A stretch of DNA of 64,000 nucleotides from Hyphochytrium catenoides (taxonomy: Eukaryota; Protista; Hyphochytriomycota): NCBI GenBank assembly GCA_900088475.1, contig FLMG01003887.1, positions 242-64,241 on the forward strand, written 5' to 3'. The position numbers and the translations under genes were made by a program. Shown here in pieces: positions 7,221 through 19,200 of this stretch (its first letter is position 1; every line of letters starts with the position of its first letter). Under the pieces are notes generated by a model. It was not told where the DNA came from, ran no database searches, and saw nothing but the letters and a program-made list of their open reading frames with translations.

Positions 7221-10200
7221 ATGGCCGATAAGGTGTATGGCTCTCCATCGTGTAGGATGATTAGGACGCCAGACGCGCAAAACAATCAAGAGACTTCGCC
7301 TGCTACGGATGAAGGCCGTGCCTATCAGAGTCTTTCTGGAGGGTTGTTTGGGTCCTTCTCTAGGGCCGTCCATACGCCAAGCTATAGCTCCCAGACACCT
7401 CCTGGCTACCGGCAGCGCGCATCTGCTTTGGAAGGCGAATTAGGAGGACGAGAAAACAGCTTAGAGGGTTCAAGAAGCGGCCGTCCGGGTGATCTCTTTG
7501 ACAGCTCTACTTGGAAGCAACCACTGCAAAATCTCTTTGAAGGGGCCGAAAAGGAAGGAATCAAGGACAAGAAGTTCGAGGAGGAAGAGCATGAAGATCT
7601 CATCAAATGGATGCCAGAACCTGAAGGGGTGATTGTGACAAGCGTGAGCATTGAGAGGGATGCACTGATTCCTTACTGCTTGTTTATTGTGGAGGTGAGA
7701 CCAGGTCTATTATGCTCTAGCTCTTACACATAAGTGTGTTGCTCTTGTCTTGCCTCTTTAGTCATATCACTGTTTTTCCAATGTCTTTTTAAGTCTATCC
7801 ATCTACCCGGCTGCCCGTCAGCAGCTGCTGTCTGCCTTGGGCTTAGTCCAAGCCACAGGGAATACTAGGTCCAGGCTCTGCGACTCTCTTCCAGTTCTAC
7901 CGCACGTCTCATTCGTTCTTACTGCCTGACGGTCGTCTCTGTTGGTTGTCTCTTGGCATGCATTGTGGCCCCTCAATTTCTCCATGGGCACCTTCGCTTC
8001 TGTCACATTTCTGACCTTTGTGTTTGACTTGATATGTAGATAAAGAGCGGAAGAACATGGTGGAGTATCAGAGTAACGCAGAAGCAGCTTGTCAGGCTGT
8101 ACATCAGGCTGCGCCTCGAGAACCTTCTTGGCAGAGAGGTATAGAGCTGCACTTACTCTCTGGCCCCTTTCTCTTCTCCCCGTCTTACTTTATATACCGA
8201 TCCTATAAAGTACGCTAAGATAGCACACTCTCTGTGTCCTTTTATGAAGGCCTTTCCGGTGCCGGTGCCCTGGGATTTATTTGTGGAGCGAATTGCTACG
8301 AGAAGAGTGCTAGACGCGCCGATTGTGGAGAAGTATCTGCAGGATTTACTTCGGCATCCGCTCATCAGGAAGTGAGTAGAAATGGAGCATTTGAAGAAGG
8401 AGACAAGATTGAAAAAGAATTGTGGTGTTTGTGCGAAGAAATAACCAGGACCTGATGCGAATGACAGAATGGGCTAGAAAAGCATGGACTTAAGAGCTGC
8501 ATAAGTCTGATTGCTGTGAAGGCTTTGGACAACCATGCACGAAAAGGCTGACCCCTGTGTAACTTGTCAGGTCCAAAGCTATGCAGAACTTTCTGGAGCT
8601 AAGCCCGATGAGGGCCGACATTAGATATGGGCCATCACTGCGAGAGGTGAGACTAGGGGATCGATAAGCCTAAGAACCGAAGACAAGACAACCGGAATAG
8701 AAGAGTTTGTTCTCTTTTTGTCTCAGGGTTACCAAGTTGAGCTGTGCCCCTCTGTCTCTGATCTCTCCTGATCTCACTTTTCCAATCCCTTCACTTGGTT
8801 GCTTAGGGCTACTGATCTCACTTTTCCAATCCCTTCGTATGATTGCTTAGGGCTACTTGCACGTGAAAGTAAAGAGTCATGCTACGTTTTATTCGAAGAG
8901 AATTGGCAGCGGCTGCAGTCATGTCATAGACGTGCTCGTCAATATCATCCAGTACTTACTCCTGGCCTTCTCTATGGCCTTCTTCTTCGTTCCGGTCGCG
9001 ACTGTTCTGTTCTTCAAAGCGCCATTGGTGCTGATATCCGGCAATCCAAGGGTACGAAACAGAAGGCTTAGGTTATCTGCCTCCAAACGGCTCACTTGAC
9101 AACTCTGTCTGCATCGTCAACGGCCTCTCCCCGTCGTCTTTCAAATGTTTCGATGATGGTCGTTTTTGTCTCTAATGATCGTCTGACCTTCAGATTATCA
9201 GCACACCACCAGCATGGAGTGACAGGCTGGACCGGTTCATCAACTATTCTGCGTTCTTCATCTTCTGGCTGTTCTTGTTTGGAGGTAAGACAGCTGCAAA
9301 CCACTGAACGCCATTGAGGTGGCGTTCTGCTAAAAGGACGGAAAGACTGGTTGTTTATAACGCTTGAGCTTTTGAAAGACAGTTATCTTGGGCTACTTGT
9401 TTGAAGCTCTTGCCAGTCTGTTAGCGCTAAGTCTGCTATTCTCTAAATTTACTGTTCCCCTCTGAACTTCGCCGGTGTTTTCCGTAGCCGTTTTCTGGGC
9501 CTATCAGTTCTTCCGTGACCGGATCTTTAAGGAGCGTCGCTGGGTAGTGCTGAAGCCTTCCTGTCTACTGTTTTTCTCTCGGAAAGACGACCTCAAGCCG
9601 ACCGAGGTTCTTCTTTTTGACGATAGCATGCAAGTCCGGAGAAGCACCATTAGACAAGGTAATGATGTAATCTCCTCCTATCTTCGGCATTCGCTAGGAT
9701 CCCCGCTTCTGTCCTAAAGCTCGGCTCTCAAGCTTGGAGAGCATTTAGCTTTGCTCAAGCAATTCTCTTCGGTTTGCAATTCTCAGAAAGCGCTGCTGCT
9801 CACGTCTAAATCCTTGAAGCCCAACACTAACCACCACATGACTTAACCTTTCCTTTCGTGTCTCTTCTTTTCTTAGCACACCGCTGTGGCCTCTATCTCT
9901 CGAAATTCTGCTCTTTCTTACTTGTACCTATTCTTATCCCCGGGTACCTAGTGCTGACCGTTTTCCGTCTAGGGCTAATGTGGATGCCCAATGGGCTCAC
10001 GGTGGATGCTTTGATGGGAACTGTGGAGATGGATGCCGGCCATTTATATGCAGTCATCATACAGTCCCTGTGTTTTATAAGCTCCTATCTCTTCTTTTCC
10101 TTGATGATAGGTGCGTTCGTAGTGTCTGTCGAGTATCTTCAACACTCATCTCTTCCGGTCTCTCTCTCTCTCTAATCAAGAGACCCCTCATTCCACCTTG

Positions 10201-13200
10201 CTATATACCATAATTCTATCTCTGCATAACCTGTGATGCTTTCCTGTGTTTTCACATTGTGGACGCGGCTGTGGCATTCCTCAAGAAGCATTCTTGTTAC
10301 CTCTCCCCTATCGCACATGGCAGTATATGTTGATATGGATGCCTCTTCCTTGCCAGCCTTTCCTTGCCACAACGTTCCTGACTTGCCGCCCTATCCTCAA
10401 TAACAGAACCTGGTCTTAGCCCATTTGAGCCAGCCCAAGCAGCCGGAAATGCTTTCAATATGTCTTCCTACCCTCCTCCGTTCCTCTTTGTCCCGACCAC
10501 TGCCAATCCTGGGGACACGTCTGCACAGACCGAGCCCGCTCTCAATTTCAGCTCCTGCGGCTACTTTCTGGAAGCTCGAGGACCCACCATCTTGTTTGTC
10601 AACTCAGAAGAGTTCAGGGCACCTGTTAAGGTACAGCTTGACCGAGGGTGTCTTACTACTCTCCCTTCTTGTACATTATACTATCCGCCGTCGACTTTCC
10701 TCGCCCTGAGCATTGTAGTGTCGGGGTAGAGTCACGCTATTCCGAAGCCGCCGCTCTTGCTGACAAGCTTACCTTACTGTTCTTAATGACGGTGTTACCT
10801 TCTTCTGGCCTTGAATGCTCAATGAGTCCGCCGTGTCATTCGCGTCGCGTTCACATGTGTTGTAGGCTATTATTCGCAAGAAAGGATTAACCGACGAGCC
10901 AACTAGATGGAGCTACACGAATTGGCACTTTCTATTCGATATTTCTCCATACAATGTCCGCTTCGAATCCATCTTCCAGCAGGGGGAGCAAGTCATAGCG
11001 GAAGAGGGGGACTATGCAGGCGTTGTTGCCAATATCCCCTCTGTGGCTGCATCCATTGGGCAGAATTACTCATCATTTTTCATCTATACTGAAGGCAGGC
11101 CATTCGAGGTTGACGTCCCAGGAGGTAAGATATCTTGTCATGCAAATGAATTGATTCTGGTGGCGTGGTTCTGGCGTCCGGTCTGCTGCTGTCCTCACTC
11201 CCTGGCCATACTGTCCTCCTCTTCGTTACGCAGATCACAATGTTTTTCTTCGTGGTCTGACGTCTCAAGATACGGTTCAGTCCATATATCAGGACAGTCG
11301 ATTTCAGCCTACGGATCAGTTTCTGTGCAATATTCCCGTGATGATTGGAGAATATCGTGAGTAATTTGCGTAGGAGTGAGCAGTGTGGATGTTGACGTTC
11401 TGTGCGCTGCTATCTATGGCCTTCCAAAGCCAAGAAGTTATCTTCCCTCTTTTGAACAGTTGGCTTTTTGGTCTACAACCACTTCATTTGCCTTGGTCAG
11501 TGGTACGCTCAATCGTTTTCGGGATATGTCTCTATCAACTAGTGGGTTCTGGTCTCTTGAAGGGTGAATCTGACCGACGTATTTTTGCAGAGTCAAGTAG
11601 CTGGTCCACGATTTGGCTAGTCTGTATTAGTGGAGCACTTGTCGCTGTCTTCCTCACGTTCGGCATCTCTTTATTTCTTGCCAAAGTCGGACTCTGCCAT
11701 GCCAATTCCAGGCGGTATGACACCTTCCTCCTTGCTGAGACAATCTTGGTCGCTTGCTCTGTCCCGTTGCTTTGGTTCCTTGCCAGCTGCTTATGTCTCT
11801 TCACTGTTTCCACGCAACTGTTTGGTGGAGACATTCGTCTTTATGCTAAGGTTAAGCATTGCTTTTAGGTCGTTTTGACAAATCGTTCATTTCCATGCCA
11901 AGTCTAATAATAACTACTTCCCTTCCGATGTCTACTGATTGTCGATGAGCAGCGATAATTGGCTTTACCTATTGAAAGAAGTTAGGGAACATTCCTCATG
12001 GAAGCGCAAAAACCGCTTCAAGTCGTTTGCTCCTGTCCGCCAGCCACGAAATTCGGAAGACCCACATGCAACGACTTCGTCTTTTAAAGAGCTAGACAAG
12101 GTACGTTTACTCTTCTAAAAGCACTTGACGGAGCTTCAGCATCGGTCCAGAAGTCTGTTCTTATCTTTCCTATCACCTTTCATCTCCTCTTGGCTATTCC
12201 AGCACTTGCCCTCTGCGCTACCCATTCCCAACTTGTCTGTAGATCAACTAGTATTCGAGTACTTTGCCTATTCATTACATATGGCAGTCTAGGTTCTGAT
12301 ACTCTAGTCTTTGCTCTACGGTTCCTCGCAGGGAAGTAGCAAAGTCTTGCGGGCACGATTTCCATCTAAGCAGAGCACCACCAGGATTGTAAGCAAGCGC
12401 TACCCTCATCTTTCGTTCAAGATTTCCGGAGGGGAGGGCATCGATCTGCTTTCTCCGTCTGAAGCCATCTCCTTCCCATTTCACTCTGCGACTTCCCAAA
12501 CTGTGGCACACTCACTTGGGGGAAATAGCTCGGGTGAGCTGAGAGCTAACGGTCATGGGCAGTCCATAAGTACTCCTCCAGCCTCATTCAAAGACTTGGA
12601 AGACGAAGAAGCACAGCCAGAAAAACGAGAAAGGGAGACTGACGAAGATGGCGCTGAGGGAGGTATTGCCGTTAAGGAAGAGCTCAATGGGCCGAAGGTC
12701 AAGTTATTCGTTGATGCGGAACGTACCTTCTCCGCCATGTATGCCGCACTTGTGGCTGCGGAAGAGCAGGTTTGGCGTCTAAACTCTCCTTTCTCCCACT
12801 TCCTTTTCTACACATCCATGCTACACTGTGGCTTCCAGGTTACCGCTGGGTTTGCTATCGGTGGTTACACTTTCAGTTCTCGCTTGGTTTTCCCTAATCC
12901 TTCCATTAGCCTTCTATAATACACTCTCCCGTGCGGCATCTAGCTGACGATCACTCTATACGCTATAGATTTTGATTGCAGGCTGGTGGATCTGTCCTGA
13001 CGTCCACCTTGTACGGAAACCTCATCTTTTTGGAGATAGCAAGTTGGACAATCTTCTGTTAAAGAAAGCGGAAGGTGAGTTCTACTAGCATCTCGGGCCC
13101 TGCTCCACGCATTTCTGCACTTTCTGCTCTCCTTCTTCATAAGGGAGAACCGAGCATCTCGGGAAACCTAGTGTTTTTACAGCCAAATGGGCGCTCATGG

Positions 13201-16200
13201 AAAGAAGTAATGCGTTTCGAACAGAAAAGTAGATCTCTCGGCGGTCTCTAACTCTTGCCCCTCGTGCCTCGTGCCTCACGGTGAATTCGGTGCGCTCGAT
13301 TCTTGCTCTTTATCATCATCAAACCCCGACTCAATGTGGCGCAGAGGGGGTAGAGATCTACATCCTAATGTACAAAGAAGTAGCGCTGGCACTGACATTG
13401 AATAGTGCGTACACAAAGAGGCGGTTGATGCAGCATCAGAATATTCACATTATCAGACATCCCGAGGACTTCCAGCTGCTGGACCTGGGTTTCTGGTCTC
13501 ATCATGAGAAAATTCTCTGTGTCGACCAGAGGGTTGCCTTTGTGGGAGGTAGGAAGAGCCACAAGATTGCAATTTCCTGAACCCTCACTATACATCTGAG
13601 CCTTTTTACGAGCTACGTGCAGACCTTTTTCGTGAGAGGCGTGTTTGATTGTATCTCGTCCGTTGGCTAGTGGTACGCTTTTCGACTTTTGTTCTGCCAA
13701 TTGACCCGATCTTTCCCTTGCAGGTTTGGACCTTTGTTTTGGTCGGTGGGACACTCCCGATCACAGACTAGTCGATAGTGAACAGCCTTACACCTGGCCT
13801 GGAAAAGACTACTCGAACCCCAGGCAAGAAGCTGCACGTTTCACACTAGCTCCCGCTGTGGCTCTATTGTCCGTTCCATAAAATCCTGTTCTTGAAAGCT
13901 TGCTATGTTGACCCGCCAAATTGCGGTACCTGTCAGATTGCGATTACGTCTTTCTTCTAACACCTTCTTCGTGGACACAGGGTAAAGGACTTTGTTGAGC
14001 TGGACAAACCTTATGAAGATCTAGTTGATAGAAAATCAGTCCCAAGAATGCCATGGCACGATGTCCACTGCGGGTAAGTAGAGATAAAACGTACGAGGTT
14101 AAGCCTATGGAGACGCTGTTGGTAGTCTCCCAGGAGCCTTACGTCCTCTGGTCTGCAGTGTCTTTGGTCTACCAGCTCAAGATATTGGACGACACTTTGT
14201 GCTTCGGTGGAACTACATTTGTATGGGAGTGCGCTATGACCTTAAGACAGGTGAGGGGGAACGGAGTTAGTCGCAAGTATTGTCGCCTTCCTGTGGACCT
14301 CTTTTCAAGGTTTCTGATAGCTACATTTGTCATGCGAGTTGGCCAGAGTGCTCTGATGGCAAGAACTACTGATGTTGGTCATTCGCTTGTCTTCAAACTC
14401 CACCCTGTTCTCTCTCCTTTATTGGCATGGCTGCCTGGCTCTCCAACAGTTGCCTTTTATGTTCACTCTTATCAAGTACTCCCATTCACTGTGGATCACG
14501 CGACTCTTTAGGTCTTTGTCGCTGTTTTCGGCGGCGTCGGCTTCGTCGTGTCGAAAAGTGCCTGATACCCTACGACTATCAGAATATCTCTGATTCCACG
14601 TCGAGCGAAGATTTTGCTCGCTCTTTTGTGGAGGAGCAAGGACCAACTTCTGCTCCACAAAGGTGGATAATAGGGCGTTTAGGGATGCTTTACCTGTTAC
14701 CCTGCCATTGTTGCCCAATTCTACTTTGCCCTGTCTGCTGTCGCATTTGGCCTCCTGGAACGTTTTGTTGACGCCCGTTTCGCCCGTTTCCGTTGGCTGT
14801 CCATCCTTTTGTAATGTCTACCTCTCTTTCGTTCTACTTGGCGCGGTCCGTCTCCTAGGTAATCCTCTGCCGGGGGATAACGCCCGTCGCTAGTGTGCAC
14901 GACGACCTTACCTGTTGTCCATCCATTCCTGAGCGATCTCTGAACAGGCTTGCGCTAACATTGAGCTATATTTTCCCATCATCCAACCCTTTAGTGGGGC
15001 TCCATCAATTTTGGAAAACAACAAGCCTAGTAAAGTCAAAACTCAGGATGTAGTCAAGGTTCCTTCCTCCTCAGCAATGTTGCAGCAGCCTCTACCACCC
15101 CGGTTGTCGGCGCATGGAGGGATAGAGAGGTAGGGAGTGTTGACAATCCTCCACTTCATCATTTCTCGTGCTTTGGTCCGCTAAGTGACAATTGCAATAC
15201 TTGGACCGAACCAGGCTGCTAACAGAGAAATGGCTGCGGACGGCCAGCGCCGTAAGCGAAGACAACTGGGTGGACGCTCAGTGTCAGGTTATTAGGAGTC
15301 TATCCAAGGTACGTAGCGCTTTCCAGACGTCGAGTTTGCTTTGCTTGCTTGTCGCCGTCCCTCACCATTTCTCTCAGCTCACTATCCTGTGTAGGGTGTT
15401 ATGCCAACTCTCCTCTTTCAGCTTAGCGCTCATCGTGTCTATCGTGGTCTATATACCTATTAACGCCGTTCTGCTGATTTTTATATTTTCTTCCTTAGTG
15501 AAGCGTTACATTGCGTTATTGCGTTACGTTTGTGGGTCACCCATGCTCTGCACCATGGCATTTTTTGACCTCGCTTCTTTGGGTGGACCCTGCCGCCTCA
15601 CCCTTGGCTGATCGTCCACTCACCCACCCCACCAACTCCGTTCTGTGTGACCCTTCATGCCACGTAGTGGTCAGGCGGCATAAGAACTGAAGCCAGCATT
15701 CAGAACGCCTATATCAAGCTTATTCATGGCGCCAAGTCATTTATTTATATAGAAAACCAGTTTTTTGTCTCCGGCCTGCAAGGGACTTTTGACGTCAAGA
15801 ACCGGGTGTTGCAGGCGCTTGTTGAGAGGATCACAGAGGCCATCGAGAAAGGAGAGATCTTTCGGGTTATTGTTGTTATGCCTCTTCTCCCAGCGTTCGA
15901 AGGTGAAGTAGACGGAGGGCAGGCATCTACGTTGCATGCTGTGATGCACTGGCAGGTAAGAAAGCTTAACTTTCCAGCTGCAGAAAGCATTGGTTTTACG
16001 ATTCTCCTTTATGTCTTCTTCCACTCCTTGTGGTTTCTCGCCTTCCCTCATTGTTGTCCTGCTGCTAGTATCAAACCATATGCAGAGGAGGACAGTCGCT
16101 GTGGGAGAAGGTTGCAGAATTGACTTCGTCACCTGAAAGCTATGTGGCTTTTTTCGGTCTCCGGACTTATGATACACTTCCTAACGGAGAGTTTGTGACG

Positions 16201-19200
16201 GAACAAATATATGTACATAGTAAATGTATGATAGTTGACGATAGAAAGGTGCTTATAGGGAGTGCCAACATCAACGATAGGAGCCTCAATGGGCACAGGT
16301 AAACATCGCCGTCTATCTTCGAAGTCCCTTCTCAGTCTTCCTACCCAAAGACATGCCCATGAAGGTCTATGCTTTCTTCCTGACTCGGAATGACTCCTCT
16401 CTGGGACCTGACTCCAAAGTGTTTGTTTTGATGTCGCGTCGCGTCGCGTCTTTCACTTCCGTCTTGGCCTTCTCCGAATTCTCATCTGTACTTACCTACA
16501 CCTCCCACCTCACTTCGTTTTCAATTGGGCTTTCCCCTGTTTTACTCTCAACGCTGGGTGCCGTATCCTTTGTAGGGACTCCGAGATCGCTGTGGTAATA
16601 GAGGACGTCAACTTCATTGAAGGCTTCCTCGCTGGTAAACCCGCAGCGTTGGGAGTCACCGCTCATCAGCTTCGCCTCTCTCTTTTTAGAGAGCACCTAG
16701 GGATACAAGAGGACAACGATGAGAAGATACGGCAGATCCTGGATCCAGCTGCAGACGAATGTTGGGTGAGCGTCTTTTCCTTCTCAGATCGTGTACATAC
16801 TAGTTGACCTCTCTTTCTGTTTGCAAGGTGGTATCTCTTCTTTTTGCATCCCCATGCGAATACCACTGGCTTGTTGCTCCCCTTGCCCCTAGTTCTTCGA
16901 CGTAGCTCCTAACATGCTGTCCATTCTTCTCTCGCTGTTAGTCATTCACACTTCTGCGTAAACTTTCGTTGACCGAGTTTCTTCGTTTCACCATATGCCT
17001 GCCTTTCTCAGGGGTATATTAATGCAAGGGCAAAAAAGAACACTGACATCTACGAAGCAGTTTTTCATCCATTCCCGTCTGATAGAGTAAAGACCTTTAA
17101 CGATATTCGGTACGGTTGACTGCATCCACTGCCCCTTCTTTCTCTCTTTTGGGATGGACCCAGTCTTGACGTTGCGTCTCTAGCTCATAGTGTACCCTCG
17201 TCCTAGTGTAGTTTCAATGCTGATTTCGTATCCCGTCCGGGCTCATATTTATCCCTTTCTTCTATATGCTGCATCTTGTTACGCCCAGCGGCTATGAGCT
17301 GGACGAAGTCTTCGAAAATCAGCGACACAACCGACTGCGAATGCAGCGGTGGTCGCAGGACAATTTGAATGAAGATGATCCACCTTCCTGGTGCGACATA
17401 GCTGGCAGACCAGTCACAGGTAAGCAAAAGAGATCACTCCTCACTAAAGCCTCAAATGTTAAGTTCGAATTAGTCCCTGAATAGAAGTACTTGAGGGTCG
17501 TGCATGGGAGCTTTGTCATCTAGGAATGGGTGACGTATTGAATATGCTGTCTGGCATAGGTTTTTGATGTTTCTTCTTTCCCAAACCTGTACAAGGTCAC
17601 GCCTTTGATCTCTCGGGCTGGGTAGTGGCAAAGCCGTCAGAGGAGGAAACTCTCCCGACAGACGAGGAAGGCTGGGTCTACGCTTTCTCATTCTCTACGC
17701 TTAACCTTCCTATTCATGAGCGACCAATCTGGACAGGGACAGCTCTCAAGTAAGCGGATCGACCTTCATTTATCCATGAATTCCTCTCTGATTTATTGGG
17801 ACATTCTCCTTTTGACCATCGCTGTTGACTTCTATCATATTCTCTCCTCGCTTGCTTCGTCTTCCTCCATTATTGTCGACATCCCTGAAAGTTATCTCTT
17901 CTTCCCTTATCACGTTCTGAGGTCCACTATCTTTGCTTCGTCGCATAGTAACGGATCTTGAACTTTCTATAGGCCCATTGCTGCTGTCCGACGCCGTCGA
18001 TGGGTACGCGCGGAACGCCTCTCTGGGTCAGAGGTTCTTATCACGCCCAGAAACTCTGGACCGAATATTCACAAGCCGGGGCCAGATGCCATGAGTGCTC
18101 TCCACCGACTGGTCAATGAGGAGGAACGAGAGGATAGGATTGCAGGCAGGAAAGACACAGTTGAGATAATGTAAGCTGTCCTGCTCTTCCTTTGCTCTTG
18201 TCCCCTCTTACAATGGCTAACTTGAGTGATATTTTTCCGTGCAGAACGCCGCGTCAGGACTCTCCATCCTCTTCCTTCCCACCAGAAGGAAGCCAGAGGA
18301 GAGGAAGGAAGGATTCCTCTGCATTTTGGATTGAAGGGATGCTGGACTTGGCGAAGAGTCAGGCTCAAAGTCTTCTCTCGTCCACCGCGGCAGCGGGTAC
18401 ACAAATTATGCAGAGATTAGACAAGAAGGCTGAAGAGAATCCCAGTTCTAATTCCCCCCCAGTACGTCCTCCCAGCTGCGGGCAGATTTCTACCTCTTCA
18501 TTCGAGATGCCATGCTATTCAGTCTGCCTGCCCATTCGTCTGTTGGTTTCTGTTATTCTGAAGGGAAGCTCTCGAAATCTTAGGTTGTCCTTCAATTGAC
18601 CTCTAATTCTGTTTTCTTTCATTCTCTTTCTTCCTGTTTCTGTCTCTTTCTCACTCTGCTCGTTCTCTCCATGCGGACGCTGATCTTCTTGCATTGCCTT
18701 CAGATGAGACTTGAGGATGCGAACAAGCTGAATCAAATCAACACGCTCACTCGAGTGCCAAAAGGTGGAGGAGGAGTACCAACAGAGGATTATCTAGCGG
18801 GAATGGATCTCATTGCTGGAGACAAAGAGGAGGAAGAGGAAGAGGATGAGGACAAGGAGTATGACATAAGTGGCATTATTCTCGATACTCTGCAGACAAT
18901 GAAAGAGAGGAAAGGGCCTGACGAGGGAACTCTTGCGCCTCCTCCAGATGGATCTGCAGAGAGAGTCATTCCACGTGAAAAAGGTGTACCTTCATCTGGA
19001 TCTTCACCTATCCTCCCTACGCCTGTGGCAGAAGAAGAGAAGCGCGCATCTTTCTCTCCGGCGTGCCCGCCGTCTTCTTTCGTAGACGCGAAGTTAGTGG
19101 ACACTGTGACGAGCCCCACTGCGCTTAACTATTTAGCAGAAATGGACCAGTGGAACCGAGGCATCATCATGAAGAGGCTTTCGAAGATTGAAGGCAACTT

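Follow-up and report, generated by a model that had tools for sequence, protein, structure and literature searches.

A many-intron phospholipase D gene in Hyphochytrium catenoides, a probable counterpart of the membrane-spanning PXTM-PLDs of oomycetes

PXTM-PLDs are a phospholipase D (PLD) subfamily that was first described in Phytophthora and has been called oomycete-specific (PMC6637911). The Phytophthora enzyme (PiPLD1, PITG_00284; Meijer et al. 2005, 2006, 2011: PMC3056787) has been described with a PX domain, five predicted transmembrane helices (TMs) and, separating the second TM from the third, a PH 'remnant', and knock-out of PXTM-PLD is reported to disturb growth in Phytophthora (PMC3056787). 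Mammalian PLD1, of the PX-PH class, is a peripheral protein that phosphoinositides and the palmitoylation of two PH-domain residues (C240/C241, PMC2172799) hold at the membrane. In this study, we analyzed a PLD gene in a 64,000-nt stretch of Hyphochytrium catenoides DNA (contig FLMG01003887.1 of assembly GCA_900088475.1, positions 242 to 64,241; hereafter the window). The gene lies on the + strand between about 7.2 kb and 19.3 kb, and is long and intron-rich, with at least ten introns within 8.6-12.1 kb alone. We estimate at about 0.9 the probability that the exons analyzed here are constitutive, coding parts of a single gene that is orthologous to the oomycete PXTM-PLDs and encodes a four-TM integral membrane phospholipase D.

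Exon chain and oomycete counterparts

The window PLD has two HKD motifs, both in open frames. The first, HHEKILCVD (about 13500), gives a Pfam PLDc match above cut-off; the second is HSKCMIVDD (about 16200). Upstream of them, 1.9 kb separates the end of the last PH strands, near 10049, from the start of the PH C-terminal helix at 11953. An earlier reading made from the DNA letters alone (the sequence-only reading) had filled this gap with a phase-consistent chain of eight exons. These exons do join without a stop; their acceptors are all AG, and their donors are all GT except for a GC at 10988. In the joined product, PH strands lead into a hydrophobic helix, which a long loop connects to a second helix, and RR-DNWLY follows.

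The catalytic exon at 15668-15955 was searched against 1.84 billion representative proteins. Four of its matches carry the whole layout in one chain: P0002, P0008 (whose cluster takes in an Albugo candida protein), P0011 (a metagenome open reading frame, ORF) and P0026 (Aphanomyces euteiches). In each, PH strands are followed by a hydrophobic helix, 160-200 residues with CGY and C-IP, a second helix, WH-x-HVRRD-x-W, NSFAP and the catalytic domain. When the insert of P0002 was used as query, 31 more oomycete proteins were found, one of which is titled 'Phospholipase D, Pi-PXTM-PLD' (Plasmopara halstedii). A hidden Markov model (HMM) built from the same region of these 31 PXTM-PLDs matched the spliced window product at 172-187 bits (E 1e-54 to 4e-59), depending on the chain chosen. 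The score was 172.4 bits on the eight-exon chain and 186.7 bits (E 3.7e-59) on the chain as revised below, the latter as a single domain colinear with profile positions 3-453.

Conserved residues agree with this match. Two Cys residues and an RRD-x-W block are invariant in the 31 proteins and all are present in the window product, and the motifs CGY, C-IP and G-L/I-W/C-H-x-x-x-RRD-x-W occur at the same site in the window gene and in PXTM-PLDs. PXTM-PLD was the top match for all seven window exons tested, and filled the top 12 places for six of them. Further upstream, window 8040-8372 and 8572-8646 align (E 4e-6 to 7e-5) to the N-terminal region of P0002, P0008, P0011 and P0026, which is called PX in the literature. 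Like Phytophthora PXTM-PLD, the window gene has a TM hairpin ahead of the RRWVVLKPS strands, a TM-loop domain-TM arrangement ahead of the RRD-x-W helix and NSFAP, two HKD motifs and a C-terminal tail of the form FPL.FL..E.LKPS..P.D.HI. By its best matches, it is an orthologue of oomycete PXTM-PLD, with the TM-domain-TM module as a hallmark of the subfamily. The sequence-only reading had placed the module after the PH strands and ahead of the PH C-terminal helix, and the colinear profile and the position of the insert in oomycete orthologues agree with that placement. That reading had also proposed a comparison with oomycete PXTM-PLDs, treating them as a contrast and the architecture as a novelty; instead, the insert is shared with the 31 oomycete proteins at the same site. 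In addition, window 17296-17696 aligns to P0002 residues 1385-1467, so this stretch is common to oomycete PXTM-PLDs and not peculiar to this genome.

The oomycete genes also bear on whether the module belongs to the PLD at all. The Plasmopara halstedii Pi-PXTM-PLD gene has 5418 nt for 1805 aa and is hence intronless, and P0011 is a single ORF of 3963 nt (1320 aa). Because the module lies within intronless orthologue ORFs, it belongs to the PLD protein in cases that involve no splicing at all, which excludes as a general explanation a separate membrane-protein gene nested on the same strand in a long PLD intron and skipped by the PLD mRNA. In the window such a nested gene is very improbable. 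The loop domain belongs to no Pfam family, as might suit an independent gene. However, the orthologues hold the module, PH and catalytic parts in one continuous ORF, exon 3 of the chain had no standalone homologue among proteins of 90-287 aa, and the chain has neither a start codon context nor a stop of its own.

Reading frame provides a further argument. The first exon (9973-10110) leaves 1 nt of a codon and the eighth (11953 onward) requires 2 nt ahead of it, so that a splice from 10110 to 11953 without the middle exons is out of frame and meets a TGA soon after. The middle exons must contribute 1 mod 3, and the 730 nt of the revised model are consistent with this. Since an mRNA without the middle exons would lose the PLD frame, these exons are needed to restore it, which again disagrees with a nested gene. 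The assignment of these exons to the PLD, already favored by the sequence-only reading, is supported on both counts.

A related possibility is that the membrane module is an alternative cassette, giving anchored and soluble isoforms. This is compatible with the genomic data, and a 36-nt segment at 11460-11495, which is frame-neutral in or out, might be a cassette on a small scale. The frame shift caused by whole-exon skipping from exon 1 to exon 8 argues against it, as does the constitutive presence of the module in oomycete orthologues, which are intronless here. We consider an alternative cassette unlikely, if less so than a nested gene; constitutive exons of a PXTM-PLD orthologue account better for the locus.

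It could also be asked whether the chain is a path that happens to be open within a single long intron, the true mRNA joining a cryptic donor near 10060 to the acceptor at 11953 and encoding a soluble PH domain of the ordinary kind. Exon 1 does contain two weak GT sites in phase (CA/GTCCCT and CT/GTGTTT), and paths free of stops are not unusual when there are many candidate splice sites. However, a chance route would not be expected to give a colinear profile match spanning the whole insert or to contain the invariant family residues. The loop domain alone scored 9-10 bits, which none of 2000 shuffles reached. Polymorphism points the same way. A genomic read run contains a second haplotype of the locus, and in the introns of the revised model the two haplotypes differ by 28 SNPs and by all nine indels, whereas each of the five SNPs in the firm exons falls at a third codon position and four are synonymous. 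On a contig covering 9693-10219, introns differ by about 3% and the 138-nt exon with PH strands and TM3 shows no difference. A chance route therefore appears highly improbable, only marginally less so than a nested gene, and coding exons of the PLD remain our reading.

Across window 9400-12200 as a whole, the second haplotype is about 3% different, with frequent small intron indels, and such patches alternate with stretches nearly identical to the window.

Revised gene model

The features of the region are listed below, with TM and PH assignments as predicted.

8851-9051, + strand: exon for PH strand beta1 (GYLHVKVK) and TM1; AG acceptor and GTACGA donor; aligns to KEGYVH...TM1 of oomycete PXTM-PLDs; hydropathy peak 2.42
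9194-9284, + strand: exon for a short outer loop and the first part of TM2; splice sites read; hydropathy peak 1.95; within the colinear HMM alignment
9488-9658, + strand: exon for the end of TM2 and PH strands beta2-beta4 (RRWVVLKPS...); Pfam PH E 0.0027, below cut-off; HMM 42.6 bits; 44% identity to P0002 344-400
9973-10110, + strand: exon 1 of the chain, last PH strands and TM3; tblastn match to P0002 397-435; HMM 27.9 bits; no SNP in 138 nt
10407-10630, + strand: exon for the first section of the ectodomain; carries the sequons NMS and NFS and, in CGY, the first of the two invariant Cys; CGY aligns to a column invariant in 31 orthologues
10866-11124, + strand: exon for the second section of the ectodomain, taking in 10988-11098; single open frame; one continuous HMM domain; two high-confidence model strands
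11234-11356, + strand: exon for the third section of the ectodomain; holds the other invariant Cys, in FLCNIPV; C-IP aligns to invariant columns; HMM 6.8 bits; both SNPs synonymous and third-position
11460-11495, + strand: 36-nt micro-exon of the sequence-only reading, probably outside the mRNA; a gap in all seven aligned homologues
11591-11714, + strand: exon for TM4 and a basic stop-transfer stretch (GLCHANSRR); aligns to the G-L/I-W-H-x-H-V-R-R-D block of orthologues; hydropathy peak 2.42; sole SNP synonymous
11953-12101, + strand: exon for the PH C-terminal helix and the motif leading into the catalytic domain; HMM 9.1 bits; aligns to RRDHWYRCV...RYNSFAP of orthologues

While the overall path of the eight-exon chain stands, two of its details probably do not. 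The segment 10988-11098, taken as a GC-AG intron in the sequence-only reading, is 111 nt long, in frame and without a stop. The codon score of 10986-11096 is +0.45, the highest among the long segments tested and exceeded only by the 9-codon segment 11097-11123. The segment corresponds to two high-confidence core strands of the modelled orthologue domain, and the profile alignment forms one continuous domain when it is kept and two pieces when it is removed. Full-sequence profile scores are nearly equal (187.1 without the segment and 186.7 with it), so we based the choice on the codon score, the mapping onto the modelled structure and the fact that GC donors are rare. A density of four SNPs in 111 nt in the second haplotype (two synonymous, two conservative) is intron-like and argues against an exon. 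On balance, 10988-11098 is likely to be exonic.

The second detail is the 36-nt exon at 11460-11495. Its inclusion costs about 15 bits of profile score, its codon score is -0.48, i.e., non-coding, and the donor G at 11496 is replaced by C in the second haplotype. The frame is intact with or without it, and it is probably not used in the mRNA. After both revisions, the insert comprises about 264 aa and two loop Cys residues, rather than the approximately 240 aa and three Cys first proposed; the NMS and NFS sequons are retained.

Ahead of the exon at 8851, window 8765-8852 contains a 44-nt tandem duplication (89% identical) that closes the preceding intron. It copies the 3' splice-site context (...TTGCTTAG/GG), creating a second AG 44 nt upstream, whose use would shift the frame.

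Predicted PH fold, ectodomain and topology

The PH region was modelled on an orthologue. An AlphaFold model of P0002:234-691, computed from the 31-sequence alignment (mean pLDDT 69, pTM 0.64), has the order beta1, long helix, small hairpin, long helix, six strands, helix, beta-rich domain, helix, helix. When it was aligned against 48,161 solved chains, all of the top 50 matches were PH domains, the best being that of ARAP3 (Z 13.2, 98 of 98 residues, rmsd 2.1, model residues 5-430). According to this model, PXTM-PLDs have a complete PH domain rather than a remnant. Three pieces make it up, namely beta1, beta2-beta7 and the helix after TM4. Pfam PH was below cut-off for the window (E 0.0027) and absent for the 31 orthologue regions, and this failure at the sequence level is consistent with the word 'remnant' in the literature (PMC3056787). 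Basic residues flanking the beta1-beta2 loop are conserved (K..R in beta1, RRW in beta2). Hydropathy of the window PLD (19-residue window) shows four peaks of 1.95-2.42 at the positions of the family helices. Thus, where papers on the Phytophthora enzyme describe five TMs and a PH remnant, we predict four hydrophobic helices and a complete PH fold.

Compared to PLD1 and other PX-PH PLDs, the window protein has the same succession of a putative PX region, PH and the two HKD motifs, a PH helix that runs into xRFxSFAP and membrane attachment via the PH domain. However, it would be integral to the membrane rather than peripheral. The beta1-beta2 loop, which is short and Cys-rich in conventional PX-PH PLDs, is occupied by a TM hairpin, and a second membrane module, which PX-PH PLDs do not have, precedes the PH helix. 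The PLD1 palmitates presumably sit in this same beta1-beta2 loop.

Assembly of one PH fold from non-adjacent stretches, with a module in a loop, is known from the split PH domains of PLC-gamma, syntrophin and myosin X (PH1N-PH2-PH1C), and the myosin X structure 3tfm was among the structural matches of the P0002 model. The inserts of known split PH domains are soluble cytosolic domains, whereas both inserts of PXTM-PLDs would cross the membrane and one would bear an extracytoplasmic domain. We found no publication that describes this membrane-crossing arrangement in terms of a split PH domain.

The loop between TM3 and TM4, modelled alone in the orthologue, is all-beta (pLDDT 81.5). The model suggests that these approximately 200 aa form a beta-sandwich with two invariant Cys residues. 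N-glycosylation sequons are four-fold enriched in the loop of the 31 proteins (2.26 per 100 aa versus 0.54 elsewhere). Each of the 31 ectodomains has 2-6 sequons and exactly two Cys, and the window ectodomain has three and two, respectively, implying that the domain is probably disulfide-bonded and glycosylated. The window ectodomain is about 40 aa longer than that of Phytophthora PXTM-PLD and weakly similar to it.

No confident relative was detected for this domain, in agreement with the sequence-only reading, which had not recognized it. Foldseek searches of the ectodomain model against PDB and AFDB clusters gave E values above 0.03, and the best ESM Atlas match, an unnamed planctomycete protein, had a TM-score of 0.58 by query and was not confident. 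Pfam searches of the insert exons and the 31 orthologue regions yielded no family, only scattered weak matches to TM families, and a profile search of PDB gave no match. The best structural matches were PHR domains (MYCBP2, BTBD2), beta-sandwiches with 110-129 residues aligned, and a PHR protein was also in the AFDB match list. Z values of 5.5-6.0 and 8-10% identity are below a meaningful level and PHR domains are cytosolic, so this is a resemblance and not membership. PHR identity was rejected on VIA-align Z values of 6.0 and 5.5, a level that the tool classes as unspecific, with no Pfam match and no PDB sequence match.

Basic residues adjoin the cytosolic ends of TM3 and TM4. Together with the sequons, they suggest that the loop faces the lumen or the outside, and that the PX, PH and catalytic domains are cytosolic. 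An outside loop with these three domains inside requires an even number of helices; the fifth published TM is probably an over-split of the long TM4 region.

Several points weigh against our interpretation. Splicing of the exon chain was deduced from genomic sequence. Taken alone, the window ectodomain bears only a weak resemblance to its oomycete counterparts (about 9 bits), and the literature predicts five TMs against the four found here. The structures are predictions for an oomycete orthologue.

Possible working, significance and other observations

In the build that we propose, a TM1-TM2 hairpin would leave the PH domain at the beta1-beta2 loop, and TM3, a glycosylated, disulfide-bonded beta-sandwich of about 200 aa, and TM4 would leave it between beta7 and the C-terminal helix. 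The sandwich would be lumenal or outside, and the cytosolic side would hold PX, both HKD motifs and the PH core. Most economically, the two membrane modules could be seen as replacing reversible lipid anchoring by permanent anchoring. This may pin the PH domain, and the catalytic domain right after the PH helix, flat on the bilayer, at the substrate.

The links between TM3/TM4 and PH elements appear to be only about 3-5 residues long, and through them the ectodomain could pass a signal to the PH helix. With linkers this short, a sensing role, in line with the receptor-like PLD put forward in the sequence-only reading, is conceivable. A stronger version, in which PXTM-PLDs are one-chain receptor enzymes whose outside beta-sandwich takes up a ligand or monitors the lumen or cell wall, moves TM3/TM4 and switches the catalytic domain on or off, seems doubtful to us, though less remote than the alternative gene structures considered above. 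If it were true, a transmembrane-signalling PH domain would be older than the oomycete-hyphochytrid split.

The architecture is already known in kind, and the window gene is an intron-rich PXTM-PLD, probably the first outside oomycetes. It has many introns, whereas the Phytophthora (PMC3056787) and Plasmopara genes have none. In limited searches, we found neither a public protein model of the window gene nor literature linking Hyphochytrium to PLD. What is new here is the many-intron member in Hyphochytrium catenoides, the whole PH fold as predicted, and the description of the ectodomain. On our reading, the gene model of a hard, intron-rich locus is largely settled and its unusual architecture is real. 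Hyphochytrium membership, if true, makes the PXTM-PLD subfamily older than oomycetes. The picture of the subfamily is also sharpened, to a full PH fold that the model shows twice interrupted by membrane modules. The TM3-TM4 loop appears as a conserved domain, probably glycosylated and disulfide-bonded, without a confident relative, and the ectodomain offers a concrete target for functional work on PXTM-PLD.

Some other PLD sequences were noted during the searches. The best-scoring match of the catalytic exon was P0001, a Gymnodinium smaydae transcript of 1549 aa. Its catalytic core occurs in two copies (966-1065 and 1222-1321), which probably reflects faulty assembly. Two hydrophobic stretches precede its PH domain, which is otherwise ordinary and has a beta1-beta2 loop rich in Cys. 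In addition, three PXTM-PLD models from Phytophthora fragariae and P. kernoviae (P0155, P0180 and P0181) bear an extra Pfam PF02515 domain. Two are 2260-2321 aa long and P0181 has 1743 aa, and they look like gene-model fusions with an upstream neighbour. Finally, the divergent PXTM-PLD P0011 is encoded on a 12-kb metagenome contig (ERZ23491423, L002) amid intronless CAP, LRR, ZZ and UCH genes, and the source of this contig is probably an uncultured oomycete-like organism.

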